Origin: Oikopleura dioica
Taxonomy: Eukaryota > Animalia > Chordata
Reading direction: 5' to 3'
NCBI GenBank assembly: GCA_907165135.1
Contig: OU015567.1
Coordinates: 12,958,001-13,022,000 of the forward strand
DNA: 64,000 bases
Under the pieces are notes generated by a model that saw only the letters and a program-made list of their open reading frames with translations, had not been told where the DNA came from and ran no database searches. Positions 3,871 to 35,148 of this stretch are shown here, piece after piece. Both the position numbers and the translations under genes were made by a program. Numbering within the stretch: the first letter of the stretch is position 1; each line of letters starts with the position of its first letter.

Positions 3871-6800
3871 TTGGTCCAAGATGATCGAGAGTGAACGTAA
3901 AGTGGTGCTTTGAAAAAAAAAAATCCGTGGTTCGTGAAGACCCGACCTGCCGCGGGCGCTAGACCTTCTTTTTGTATCTATTTTATTTTTTCTAACACTG
4001 CCTCTAGCTTAAGCTAAACTACATAATTGCTAAAGGTTCTATAGACTATAGTACCGCCTAGCGGGGGGCTTTTTTTGTTTTCTTTTGATTCTTGTCTTTG
4101 TTTATGGTGAATATGTTACACAGAAAAACAGAACCATTTCTCTGGAAAATACGTACCATTTTTTCCAAACGGAACGTTATTTGAAAAAGATGGAAATGGT
4201 CGGTCGGAGGGTTTTTATACGCCGGTAGTCAAATATGAAAAATATAATAGAGTTTAGCTCAAAGAAATTTCCGGGAATTGAAAGCAAGGGTACCTTTTAC
4301 TTCCTCGTTAAGTAAAGTCTATATTTAATGACCCCTAAAAATGAAGAAGTTACCCTGAATTCAACCAATTAATAGGCCTTCTATTTACTTGCAAATTATC
4401 TCTTTGAATCTGCTCGACATCATAAAAATCCGATTTTCTGCCCATTTTTTCAAAATAAAATATTCTTTGGGAAAATTGAAAAAAAAACGACTGTCCAAAG
4501 ATTTTATATTGAGGCCTTTGATTCACGGCAAAAATGAATGGGAATTTTAAGATTGAAAATTTGCATGATTGAATAATTGACTGGGAACCAAGTGAGCTGG
4601 TGAATAAACCTTTTTGACTTTCTTGAGTGGAATCAGCGCATCTCCTGAGTGGAGGAAATCGCCTTGGCTGATATCTTCAGTAAACTCATCTCCTTTCAGA
4701 AGGGTACTCAATGTTCACCTTTGTTTCTCATGTCTAACTTTCGTATCCTTTCCTGAAAAACTCTCGGTTCCAGACTCGGAAATCTCTTCTGTCAAAGGCT
4801 TTGCTTTCATTCTTGAAATTCAAAAACGCAGAAAAATAGACCCAAAACTGATAACTTCTCAAAAATCGAGACTGACTGATTTCCGATCTGATGCTCGTCG
4901 CCGATTGTTTTTGAGAAAAAGTGGAACCTCCCGCTGTTCCTGACTGACCCGGTTACGGCAGCTTTATGGTACAGAGCGTCAACCCTTTAAGTATTTGACG
5001 CGCAAATAAGGGATTACAATAAACCCTTTTCATTGTGTCTCCTTTGGTTAATTCTGAAGAGACTCAACTGCTGAATACTATTTTCAAATCATCATGGATC
5101 ATTTGACCGATTAGATTTTAGTTCGTAAAGATGGCCAACAATTTCTTTCTTAAAGATGGCGAAACCCCTTCGCGGCTTTCGTTTTCATTTTAGCTCTTCA
5201 AAACCTGACTCAGTTTTTCTACACAGGTTGCCGAGCTCATATAATATGAGTCATATTTGTGGGCTTATTGGGCAGAATTGGGAAAGAGAGCGTTCCTTTG
5301 ATAGTTGACGAACAGTCTATCCATCTCTTTATGATTTTTCAAGTCCATGAGCTCCAGGAGCATTCGCTGCTTCATTTTGAACTCCTCGGTATCACACGCG
5401 GACAAAATATTAGGCATTTTTTTTGATCCCTCTTCTCAGAAACGCTCGCTGGTTACTCCTCGTTTCAAGCTTTTAAACGGTCGCTGTTAGCAAGAACAAT
5501 CCTTTGACGCAAAAGCGCATATTGCACCCGTCAAAAGTAGCAATTTGAACGAAAATTTAAATAAATATGTTTATTACAATCTTCTAAAAATCAATGGTGG
5601 TCATAGCTGCTTTTGTGGAAGTTAAAGCCAGGCATTACAGATGATTTACAGGCGGGGTCACTTTCGCTGACAATTTCATCCATATTTGGGAGTTGCCAAA
5701 TCGCGCAAATTAATGCATTTAAAATCAGTAAGATTCCCTTGAATAAATATAAATTTTGCATAACTAAAAAATAGTGTTCAACTTACTTGTGTGTTTGAAA
5801 TGATTGTCCATCCCCGAAGCTGTTCGCCACCTTTTCTCAGGGTGGGCAATTATTGGTCGAGGGGGTTGTGTGTTAATTGGGGAGGGAGACGCTGGTAGGT
5901 CCCCTGTTCGTGAAACATTTTTCGACCAACACAGCCTCTCTCCCATTTGGCAGCCCCTAGGGGCCCTTGAAGAAGGAGGGAAAACGAGTCCCTCCCCCTC
6001 CTACTGCCCAATTTTCAGCCTGCATTTTGCACACCCTAGCCTGTTCTGGCAAACACTCGCTTGTGCCAGAAAAAAGAACCGTAAGTAACGCCTCTACAAA
6101 AGAACCGTGTTATCAATATTTCCTCCATTTTAACCTTGCCCGTACATGTGGATAACGGTCAAAATAAAGACCACGAGAACATAAGAAAAGCCAGTCTGCA
6201 GAGATACTCTTCCACCCAACAAAAACGCCAAAGGAACACCGAGTGCGGTCGATAACATTATCATACTTTGCTGGCTCGAGGAGAGATAGCGCTCTAAAAA
6301 ATCTTAGCCCCGCGGAGCCGTTTCCTGGGACAAGAATAAGGCGAAGCCATTACTCTGAAGAAATGCGTTACCAAAACGATGAAGTAAATTAGCGTGAGCC
6401 ACATTCTAGCGCGAATGGCGTTGAGGTAGGGGCAGTTGATCGTACTGAAATTTTCTGTAAGAGGAATGACTGCTGTAGGATTCAATCCAACCCATGATGA
6501 TCTGAAGAATCATCACTGTTTGTGGTCATTTATCGATAAACTGCATCCTCAAAGCCTGTTATGAAAGGTGAATCTTCATAACTCATTATTCTAGAATTTC
6601 TATTTATCTGATCATTAGCTGGCAAGACCATCATCTGAAGGAATGATACCTCAGCAAATTTCAGAGTCAAAGGGCTTTTGCGACTTTCGGAAGCTTTTGC
6701 GTAAATATTTTATCGGCGATTATAAAATTAAATGTGTAGACGTCTCCTCGTGTGTATCAAGTGTGGGAAATCGAGGTTTGGCTTATTCGTCACCCACCCG

Positions 6801-31462: not shown

Positions 31463-34390
31463 TCACTTACTGATGCTCCAGAAATAATAAATGCTTCCCA
31501 CGATAGCCACAAAGCAATAGACATAAAGCTTACTTGGGATCCAGTCTAGCAATAAAATCTAGTCAATGTTATCAGTTTGATGTCTTTGGATCCCAAACAG
31601 TAGACTGTCTATTATCAGCGCGATGTACCTCCACTCATCACTTACAGTACTTTCATCGTCGTTTTGCTGCATCGTTGTAGTGATGAAATCTAAATGAACC
31701 GCCTCAACCTCTTGAATAGTAACGCACATTCTCAGTTTTAAAAGCCGCTTTCTGAATTTCTATTTTAAGTTCTCTCAGCAGCTGCGAATGTAATCATATG
31801 GAAACAACGCTTTTGAAATTGGGAGCAGTTCTTAAGTTCTTCAATTTGATTGTAATCGTTTTGGTATTGAATCAATTTTGAGATTAAGCTTACCGATAGC
31901 TTCTACCGCTGGCCTGAAACGGGCTTCTTTCTCTAATACCGTATTAACTTGTTTTCGTGAAACGAAGCCCGATTCCTGAGTTCTCGCGCTAATGGCCGTG
32001 TTGTATTTCGCACTGATGTCGACATCGCCTTTCTATCTTGAGAATAATCTTCAATTGTACCTCGTTTACGCACGTATAACAAAGAGATTAGACCTCGTGC
32101 TTTTTAGAACTTGATTTCAATGAAAATTACGATCCTGAACAACCAAATAGCTTCGAATGGGTGTTAAACATAATTTCTGACGCTACAGCTTTTCCCCCGT
32201 CTTCTTCAAGCTCTAGTTCGTAGCACATTGATGTCGTTTTCGCTAGAGAATCGTTAGATATAGAATGGAAGATGTTCCCTTACTATCTTCTCCGTGAGAG
32301 TTTCTTCTTGGCATATCAATTTCAAAAGGAGGGGGTCTCTTGATATTCAAATATCTCGCGATGTAGTCAATGAAGATGACTTGAAAATATCGAGGAAGCT
32401 TGTGAGTCGCGCTCGATCGGAAGTGTACATTACAAACGACGACGCTCATAATCACGGAGAAAGATACCATCATGATTGTAAACAGCAGATAGCTACTTTT
32501 GAAAGGCTCATTTAAGCAATTAGATTTTATCCTTTTAATAAATCTGTCTAAAATGGCGTAATAGTTTCTTGAATTAAATTTTTCAAGCCGTATCCTGAGA
32601 AGCGGTATTTCCATCGACGTTTCTGGAGTATGCTTACAAAGAAAATAAATCATAAGCTTCCGTCTGCCCTCACCTTAGCTAAGAGCGTAAGAAAGACTGT
32701 CTGTCCGATCAAAATGGAAATTGAAAGCGTCATTTTTTCGCAGGCATCCGTTGGGAGGTAGAAGACGAAAATAGAGAGGAAGAACATTAGCCATATAGGG
32801 AGAATCATGCTAAAAGATATCATTCGATTTTCTTTAAGGGCAAAGCTGTGACATAGCTATGGGTGTAAGCTGTGACATTTATCAAAATATTTGACAGATG
32901 CTCTTATGAGCGATGACTGAGTTAACGGAAAAAGCTACAAGGAAGGAAAAAGAATCTTCGAGGTCATACTTACTTCAGGATGTAGAATAGGGGCATTCGT
33001 TGGAAGTGATATTCAAAGTGAATCTCCTTGAAAGACAGGTCGGAGTCCATAGAATCGACAATCGAGATATTTGTTCGCAACTTTAATTGGCTTTTTAACA
33101 TACTTTTTTACAAACTTAAGGTACAAATGAATATAAGCCCGAGTCACAAAACCCACTCGGCAGAAACATTTGAGCCTTCAACATAAGAAGTTTCGCCGGC
33201 AAATGTTAGGTTGTAGTCGAGATATGAGTTTTCTGCTCAGGATAAAAAGTGTTCAACTACAAGTAGCTTGTTAGTAAGCAAGCAAAGCGTGTTAAAATGA
33301 TTGTCTTTCAGTAAGCCTTTCCAGAACCCATTCAGCGGAAACATTTGAGCCTTCTACATACGACGTTTCAAGAGCAAAGTCATAGTTAAAATCCAGATTG
33401 CGCGCGTCTAATTCTAGGGCTAAAGCAAGCGAGCGAGAGCAGGTTAACTTGAGCTTGAGCTTTATCCCGTAACAAAGTCGGTGGATCGGAAAATCAAACT
33501 GCATTTTTGTCGATCTATTTTTGATAAAAAATATAATTAGACTAGTAGCCATGGAGTTGACCGATTGATTCTCTAAGTCTATTTTCTGAAACCAATTATA
33601 ATTATCAAATCCTTTACAAAGGGAAAGACCTTGACATTCAGCGAGCAAGTAGATTTATAAAGAGCTGCAGATAATTCTTCAAGAATAGATCTATCATAGA
33701 TGTACAATTATATGAAACATAGTAATTCAATTTTACTTTGCCTTGGATCCAATACACATTATCCAAGACAATTAATATACAAGAAGCTTTTACGCATATA
33801 AATATCGTGAATAAAGGTAGATTTATGCAATCATGAATTATTCGCCGGCACTCTTATTTTCGAAGAACCTATCCTGGCGGCATCCATGAAATATATCCAG
33901 TGTTGTAGAGCTTCAACTTCGTTTTGAACTTAGTTTCAAACACACCGTCCTTGTTGTTGTAGAACACCGTTCCAGGCTTCCAAATTAATTGGCTATTGAT
34001 ATTCGTCACCGATATATTGCTATTAATTAATGAGAAAAACGAAAATCAATTAAAGGTACTTATAGTCTTCTGGATTCCAGCTAAGGCGTTCATCAGTCCA
34101 GTCAACCACGTTATATCCTATTAATTGCTTTAGATGAGCAATAAAATCGTATGGCTTACCGGCCATGACAATTTCTTCCTCTCGCATCTTTATTGTAAGA
34201 AGGCGTTGAACAACCATGGCTCAGGTGGAGGTTTTTTTTAATAGCTCTAATACAATTCACAAAGATTATATAAAGTGATAAAACCGTAAAGTGATTTTCT
34301 ACCGCGCTTGAATAGACAAGCATTTTTGATTATATAATAAAATCATCCGATGATAATTGAAAAGAAACGAGATGAACTTCATGGAATTTG
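31463..34390 (-). CDS. Nicotinic acetylcholine receptor non-alpha subunit (gamma/delta/epsilon-like M2)
   Basis: WTDERLSWNPEDY, IWKPGTVFYNNKDG, WMPPALYKSTCSLNVKVFPF(D)RQKC, QRMPLFYILN, M2 EKMTLSISILIGQTVFLTLLAK, M3 YLLFTIMMV..VVCNVHFRS, pre-M4 DEWRYIALIID. No vicinal CC in loop C. Both ends are approximate. Confidence 0.9.
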
Positions 34391-35148
34391 TATAACCTCC
34401 GTCCCGAAATTAACTATAATTGGCGACTGCATTCCATCCTCCATCATTTGATTTGAAAACGGAGCGATGTTCTTTTCTAATAAAATTCAAAACATAAAAT
34501 TTGCAAAAATTATTGAAAGATACCATAGCCGGAGAGAATCGTCTTTTGTAATTTATTCTCCCACCATCCAGGCGGAAGCTGAGGACGAATCATTTTCGCA
34601 ATATTTTGTGCATTTGCAAGATGAAATACGAATAGGGCAATTAGCGTACTTTTCATTCTCTTTCGCTCTTATTTTTTGCGTATTTTCGCACCTCCTAGTT
34701 AGCGCCCATGGCCAGCTGATAGCGCGATTTGCAGCTTTTTCTTTTAGGTAGAGGATGAAAGGAACCATCCTGTAAAAGACACAAGGTCTTAAGGGGATGG
34801 TGGTCGAGAATCGTATTTCTTTCAACAAGAAGAAGATCTTGGTCTTCTTAGTTGATGATCATGATTTTTCCTACCAACGCACCAAAAGATTATGGAAATT
34901 GACGTTTTTCCGTCAACGTTAAGTATTTTCTCTTCCTAATTTCGATGAGTAGAACTTGACCAAATAGTGAGGCGAATAATTTATTGGCAAAATCATAACT
35001 TATTGATGAAGAGGCAGCGTTTTGAGAACACTGTGGTATGAGAAGATCAGTTGTAGTAATGTGGCTTTATACCAGTATAAAGCAGAAAAATGGCAGTTTG
35101 AGAAGAGGGTAAATTTTTGTACAGTTTAGTTTAAGTGTGTTTGGATTA

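Follow-up and report, generated by a model that had tools for sequence, protein, structure and literature searches.

The question that this locus raises is whether one nAChR gene of Oikopleura dioica carries two alternative versions of the same coding exon, and whether both of them are used. It comes from a sequence-only reading of the window (the whole 64,000-nucleotide stretch of DNA that was analyzed, taken from the Okinawa O. dioica assembly OKI2018_I69), in which two tandem duplicated exons of the ligand-binding domain (LBD) were proposed to be spliced mutually exclusively. The gene is the following.

31463 to 34655, minus strand: nAChR non-alpha subunit gene, defined by Pfam domains, by tblastn of the public proteins P0207 and P0152 onto the window, and by open reading frame pieces

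The gene encodes a beta-type nAChR subunit

The exons were searched singly, and full-length comparisons were made with the public proteins P0004, P0152, and P0207. The gene starts with a methionine and signal peptide near 34655 and ends with a stop codon near 31463. In the Pfam search, exon pieces match PF02931 (Neur_chan_LBD; E values of 3.7e-10 and 0.012) and PF02932 (Neur_chan_memb; E values of 2.2e-11, 2.6e-11, and 0.063). The PDB matches of the exon pieces are exclusively nAChR subunits, with human beta2 (5kxi_B) scoring best, and the closest named relatives in the public protein collections are vertebrate muscle beta1 subunits, which are 38 to 42% identical. These domain, PDB, and database matches bear out the earlier identification of the gene as an nAChR subunit. 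The downstream exon at 33080-32974 contains no cysteine, which leaves loop C without a vicinal Cys pair, and for this reason the subunit is assigned to the non-alpha class. Judged from its sequence, the O. dioica gene is a beta-type (non-alpha) nAChR subunit. A search of the OKI2018_I69 assembly found no further copies in the same genome.

The public models depart from this gene in several places. P0207 (OKI2018_I69.chr2.g7649.t1; 34217-31119) maps to the locus and covers the gene in part. It begins at an internal methionine, without the signal-peptide exons near 34655; it reads in frame through the intron region 33588-33408, which destroys the Cys-loop; and it has a wrong C terminus where M4 (31558-31466) belongs. 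The Bergen model, P0004, is a 254-amino-acid fragment in which the Cys-loop is likewise skipped. Farther downstream, a 41-nt GT..AG intron (32673-32633), confirmed by 5 junction reads, separates M2 from the PETSMEIPLL exon, which is just 35 nt long (32632-32598).

Exons A and B are tandem copies, and only one of them fits in a productive mRNA

The region around the two candidate exons is laid out as follows.

33467 to 33514, minus strand: constitutive exon upstream of the pair, carrying the second half of the Cys-loop (...DRQKCSLIFRSTDF..), placed by sequence, lineage alignments, and homology to P0152, with no RNA read across its junction
33408 to 33466, minus strand: intron upstream of exon A, holding the conserved GCTCGCTTGCTT element at 33437-33422
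33322 to 33407, minus strand: exon A, 86 nt, entered in phase 1 and left in phase 0, placed by 12 junction reads, the public proteins P0207 and P0004, and four lineages
33233 to 33321, minus strand: intron A-B, 89 nt, with a GA start (gaaagg), a match to the TACTAAC branch site at 33276-33270, a pyrimidine tract, and cag before exon B
33147 to 33232, minus strand: exon B, 86 nt, unannotated, entered in phase 1 like A, placed by gapless alignment to A and by four-lineage conservation
33081 to 33146, minus strand: intron between B and the next exon, 66 nt, with GGCTT at 33138-33134 and AAGCC just before the acceptor
32974 to 33080, minus strand: constitutive downstream exon (LRTNIS...FQRMPLFYIL; loop C region to pre-M1), for which the loose-end consensus of the RNA reads matches the Bergen copy in L002

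The upstream exon ends in phase 1. Its likely donor is a GA donor (g/gataaa, with the slash marking the splice point) at 33467/33466, which is kept as G/GATA in four lineages, and an alternative end at 33473 is possible.

Exons A and B lie in tandem, are equal in length at 86 nt, align with no gap, and share entry phase 1. The sequence and the alignments confirm that the minus strand carries two homologous coding segments in tandem, located where the sequence-only reading had put them. The last 16 codons of A and B specify the same amino acids, and all seven base differences between them are synonymous; in simulations, 7 random changes are all synonymous at P = 1.5e-5 to 7.5e-5, which agrees with the earlier statement that the shared part differs at synonymous sites only. 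About 10 residues differ within the first 12 to 13 codons. When the 29-residue segment is aligned to human beta2 (5kxi_B), it corresponds to the end of beta8, loop F, and the start of beta9, the same assignment as had been made before alignment. A and B diverge in the first half of this beta8-beta9 stretch and are identical at the loop F tip and in beta9.

Because 86 is not a multiple of 3, exactly one of the two exons can be present in each productive mRNA. Inclusion of both A and B leads to a stop after 8 codons of B, and inclusion of neither copy leads to a frameshift. The earlier claim that including both exons shifts the frame thus holds with the corrected borders described below. Mutual exclusivity of the productive mRNAs follows from the frame alone. 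According to a statement cited in PMC1919356, tandem exon duplicates are usually spliced mutually exclusively.

RNA reads define the end of exon A and its GA donor

RNA runs X5 and X6 derive from a population of the North Atlantic type, the reads of which are 90 to 95% alike to the window and identical in sequence to the Bergen assembly copy. This degree of divergence places introns and many exon parts beyond read mapping. Twelve reads (3 in X5 and 9 in X6) join exon A at 33322 to the next exon at 33080 and skip B. In these reads ...EWVL passes directly to LRTN..., a junction that is shared by the public model P0207. Since the reads join 33322 to 33080, exon A ends in phase 0 and is followed by a GA-start intron (ctg/gaaagg), and this GA start is kept in all lineages. 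GA-AG introns are frequent in O. dioica (PMC7072748).

These results change several details of the sequence-only reading. It had placed exon A at 33413-33317, and the junction reads, together with the acceptor conserved among lineages, move it to 33407-33322. The acceptor of A that is kept in four lineages is ttag/ac at 33408/33407; a second in-phase AG, at 33414/33413, is present in Okinawa-type sequences only. A GC donor had been assigned to A, which is incompatible with junction reads that cut after 33322 at the GA donor. For exon B, placed earlier at 33232-33148, the start stands and comparison with the other lineages and with RNA reads shifts the end to 33147. Both exons do start in phase 1 as proposed, but the phase 2 end does not survive, as the RNA reads show A ending in phase 0.

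Read depth is about 18 reads on A versus 2 on B (one each in X5 and X6). The two B reads lie at ~33147/50-33190 (a range taken from depth bins), and the X5 read reaches the last base of B. These two reads may represent either mRNA that contains B or unspliced pre-mRNA. No read in X5 or X6 spans a junction from the upstream exon to B or from B to the downstream exon, no A-to-B junction is reported among the RNA reads, and the single-cell RNA run X1 has zero reads on the stretch. The public protein collections that were searched yielded no protein with B, and B is missing from the public annotation. The sequence-only reading had proposed looking in RNA for isoforms that contain only A and only B: the A-only form is seen in the 12 junction reads, and a B-only form has no junction read in X5 or X6.

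Both exons are conserved as coding sequence in four lineages

We compared the window with three further O. dioica-type lineages: the Bergen assembly GCA_000209535.1 (L002, found via P0004), a lineage represented by L011 and L012, and the lineage of L013. An environmental metagenome contig, L010, is identical to Bergen L002. The L011/L012 lineage is ~87% identical to the window, introns included, and L013 is a Bergen-like yet distinct lineage. Both A and B are present in all four. The orthologues cluster by exon and not by lineage, which implies that the duplication is older than the lineage splits and that no gene conversion has occurred since.

Across the lineages, exon B has no gap in any pair, has no stop, and is 80 to 94% identical. 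This identity is on a par with that of exon A and higher than that of the constitutive next exon. In the deep pairs, by contrast, identity in the flanking introns is 44 to 59% and gap columns are numerous, and intron A-B in particular is weakly conserved, with many indels among lineages. With 71 of its 86 positions identical versus an intron level of 0.60, exon B gives a binomial P of 6e-6. Its acceptor AG is at the identical aligned position in all four lineages, and its split first codon reads GAA or GAG, both Glu, throughout. The last 15 residues of B are invariant, with synonymous variation in 3 of the codons. Along the two recent branches, B has undergone 6 synonymous and 4 nonsynonymous changes (P = 0.013 to 0.047 versus neutrality) and the RNA-confirmed exon A 4 synonymous and 6 nonsynonymous changes; on these branches B is at least as constrained as A. 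As judged from these substitution patterns, the four-lineage comparison shows protein-level purifying selection on both exons, and the constraint bears out the earlier suggestion that both are under selection. A pseudo-exon would not be expected to stay open, free of indels, and biased toward synonymous change beside nearly unalignable introns in four lineages, and for this reason we regard B as a functional coding exon.

We also considered a reduced synonymous rate as a mark of alternative exons and rejected it: pS in A and B is 0.34 to 0.43, versus 0.81 to 0.92 in two neighboring exons, but it is also 0.43 in the M1-M2 exon.

One alternative is that B is a relic duplicate that is no longer spliced in these lineages, or has very recently ceased to be. 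Such a relic would be unannotated and without junction reads, as B is, and the A-type donor has been lost from B in all four lineages. However, in every lineage the donor region has already diverged, which would make a loss of function old, and yet B has remained open, free of indels, and conserved like A while the introns around it have become nearly unalignable. We therefore consider a relic very unlikely.

Another alternative is that B is a poison or decoy exon, either included after A or recognized without being included, which would produce a premature stop or tune the splicing of A and would be conserved at the RNA level. The stop that follows 8 B codons in an A+B transcript, the lack of an obvious donor on B, the small number of reads on B, and the short conserved intron motifs beside both exons (GGCTT, AAGCC, and a GCTCGCTTGCTT-like element) are all consistent with such a role. 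Nevertheless, the variation in B falls at the third codon positions of the frame in which B replaces A, and it does so across the whole 3' half of the exon, beyond the stop of an A+B transcript. Constraint on RNA only does not predict that A-like amino acids would be kept while synonymous sites diverge, and the A-to-B junction that inclusion would create is absent from the reported reads. A poison or decoy function is, in our judgment, unlikely.

Marine-metagenome open reading frames of other appendicularian-type organisms (L005, L006-L008, and L009) have a single copy of the segment and are partly intronless. The duplication therefore appears to be specific to the O. dioica complex. Conservation in other appendicularians had been put forward as a check on the proposal; both copies are present in the four O. 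dioica-type lineages and one copy in the metagenome relatives. In the related subunit genes at L005 2074-3222, L009 225-1355, and L006 6001-6579, which are ~60% identical, the region is mostly or wholly one open reading frame, which indicates that appendicularian-type species differ strongly in the introns that they have in this gene.

The 3' end of exon B and other noncanonical junctions

Because an in-frame stop directly follows 33147, exon B must end at or before this position. At the position equivalent to the A donor, B is followed by TG (Okinawa and L011) or CG (Bergen and L013), neither of which would begin an intron with G. We enumerated all donor/acceptor pairs for B in the four lineages. 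The only donors that are productive in all four are phase 0 donors joined to the main acceptor, namely, TGG/GTTTTG and the A-equivalent TTG/YGA. TGG/GTTTTG is weak and conserved, and no other G-start donor of B is productive in every one of the four lineages. The one B read that is informative extends beyond TGG to the final base of B, which fits the A-equivalent site or unspliced RNA.

Two other candidates were rejected. Splicing of B as TT/G(T or C)GA to an AG 10 nt upstream of the main acceptor is productive in the window, Bergen, and L013, and it meets an in-frame TAA in L011/L012. A conserved GA donor lies one base after B (T/GA or C/GA), and no acceptor gives it an open frame.

The stop close behind B also allows a reading in which B terminates the coding sequence, with retention of the following intron giving a truncated, secreted N-terminal fragment. 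An in-frame stop does occur soon after B in all four lineages, as a TGA directly in the window and L011 and 1 to 4 codons farther on in Bergen and L013, and the X5 read runs to the last base of B. The product, however, would be missing beta9, beta10, loop C, and every membrane helix and would probably not fold as an LBD; neither the position nor the codon of the stop is conserved, and in an AT-rich intron chance would be expected to place a stop close by. Such a truncated product is extremely unlikely.

Noncanonical junctions are found elsewhere in this gene. The Cys-loop, C-x13-C with FPFD-x-Q-x-C, is present and is formed from CSLNVKVFPF (ending at 33618) and DRQKC (from 33514) via a noncanonical junction. 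The constitutive Cys-loop intron (33618-33514, minus strand; FPF / DRQKC) starts with GT and ends with AG, yet the frame and homology need a junction that is one base off. The options are TTT G/T(A or T)A...ATAG/A and /GT...ATA/G, and in-register removal of GT..AG leads to a stop or to nonsense. The one-base-off junction is found in the window, in L011, and in Bergen L002/L010, where both sides were read, and in L013 for the acceptor side only. Its geometry is the same as that of TTG/TGA at B. In addition, at least three introns of the gene appear to start with GA: at 33874/33873 (g/gatagg), at 33467/33466 (g/gataaa), and at 33322/33321 (g/gaaagg). The first two are placed by frame and homology and are kept in other lineages, and the third has junction reads.

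A bolder proposal can be built on these junctions: the loop F exon swap would give two subunit isoforms, with B spliced one base off GT/GC (TTG/YGA...AG) in the same manner as the Cys-loop intron (TTT G/T..ATAG/A), and the two together would suggest that Oikopleura has a class of register-shifted introns not described before. We regard this as possible but doubtful. The B junction and the Cys-loop intron junction nonetheless offer two concrete places at which to gauge how far Oikopleura departs from GT-AG splicing.

A model for exons A and B, and its relation to known systems

Based on the frame, the RNA junctions of A, and the conservation of B, the explanation that we favor, and consider probable, is that A and B are mutually exclusive exons of a beta-type nAChR gene that arose by an ancestral tandem duplication, with A as the default and B as a minor or restricted form. 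Under this model, one exon together with a few flanking intron bases would have been duplicated in tandem in an ancestor of the O. dioica species complex. The two copies would now be alternatives, each encoding the 29 residues that begin at the end of beta8, span loop F, and reach the start of beta9, and each mRNA would carry one of them. The A form would be the default in the sampled RNA, and the B form would be either minor or limited to a stage or cell type. Use of B would alter ~10 of the first 13 residues and add an N-x-T sequon, which is present in three of the four lineages and lost in L013, and would leave the loop F tip and beta9 as they are. We infer that B is spliced in, and likewise the point at which it ends; the case for its use rests on the selection described above. 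The A and B forms may differ in assembly, gating, or ligand response.

The nearest published parallel is the insect nAChR alpha6 gene, which has mutually exclusive exons 3a/3b and 8a/8b/8c (PMC1919356; also PMC6393475 and PMC5111602). As in Oikopleura, there are tandem duplicated exons in an nAChR gene, conserved orthologous copies, and one dominant copy, and the outcome is isoforms from a single gene (PMC1919356), as would be the case in Oikopleura. The insect gene, unlike the chordate non-alpha, beta-type gene of Oikopleura, encodes an alpha7-like alpha subunit, and its exon use is proven by RT-PCR, whereas use of B is what we infer here. The alternative exons of insect alpha6 cover parts of the subunit other than beta8-beta9/loop F.

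Insect RDL, a GABA receptor, has alternative exon 6 variants over the loop F/loop C region. It resembles the Oikopleura pair in having alternative exon versions for the loop F region of a Cys-loop receptor LBD, but it is an arthropod anion channel in which electrophysiology shows functional differences, while the Oikopleura pair is known from sequence and RNA reads. To our knowledge, a loop F exon swap in a chordate nAChR would be the first known outside arthropods.

In vertebrate muscle, the gamma/epsilon switch exchanges whole subunits encoded by two separate genes. The hypothesis, put forward in the sequence-only reading, that the Oikopleura gene might make two pharmacologically distinct subunits draws on an analogy with this switch. 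The likeness is that two non-alpha forms could give receptors of different properties; the difference is that a single Oikopleura gene would swap 29 residues.

Mutually exclusive nAChR exons are already known in insects (PMC1919356), and the exon pair in this Oikopleura gene is new. Our literature search turned up no paper that treats nAChR splicing in Oikopleura or mutually exclusive exons of this gene. Owing to noncanonical introns, the public gene models for Okinawa and Bergen omit exon B, which is conserved and coding, and get the Cys-loop wrong. The beta8-beta9/loop F stretch lies at the subunit interface and, in other Cys-loop receptors, is tied to gating and to the response to ligand. 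Should B be used, a single gene in a compact chordate genome would make two versions of a non-alpha nAChR subunit that differ in this stretch, which would be a natural experiment on its role and a counterpart in chordates of the exon swaps in insect nAChR and RDL.

Sequence elements that may bear on exon choice

In all four lineages, A and B are each followed by GGCTT, and AAGCC stands ahead of the downstream exon that they share. RNA folding pairs GGCTT with AAGCC and loops B out. The fraction of shuffled sequences that form an after-A duplex at least as stable is 0.003 in Okinawa, 0.018 in Bergen, 0.20 in L011, and 0.20 in L013, and folds of the whole region are not unusual (z-scores of -0.67 and -1.42). 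Long-range RNA pairing that loops out B is thus suggestive in the window and Bergen and not in L011 or L013, and we did not retain it as an explanation; with a duplex that beats the shuffles in two of four lineages, GGCTT/AAGCC pairing as the control of exon choice is a lead and not a finding.

Exon choice after tandem duplication has been modeled by competing RNA structures of docking and selector sequences (PMC6071210). The Oikopleura arrangement resembles this model in that the duplicated exons took intron flanks along with them and in that GGCTT and AAGCC are complementary, and it differs in that the conserved pairing core is merely 5 to 7 bp here. Steric hindrance is an unlikely cause of exclusivity, given that intron A-B is 89 to 158 nt long in comparison with a median intron of 49 bp in the O. 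dioica genome (PMC8008620).

A GCTCGCTTGCTT-like element that is rich in YGCY lies upstream of both A (33437-33422) and B (33290-33277) and, in L002, at 5514-5536 and 5699-5713. It is kept between lineages inside otherwise diverged introns, and it could serve as a splicing-factor site or mark a branch or pyrimidine region.
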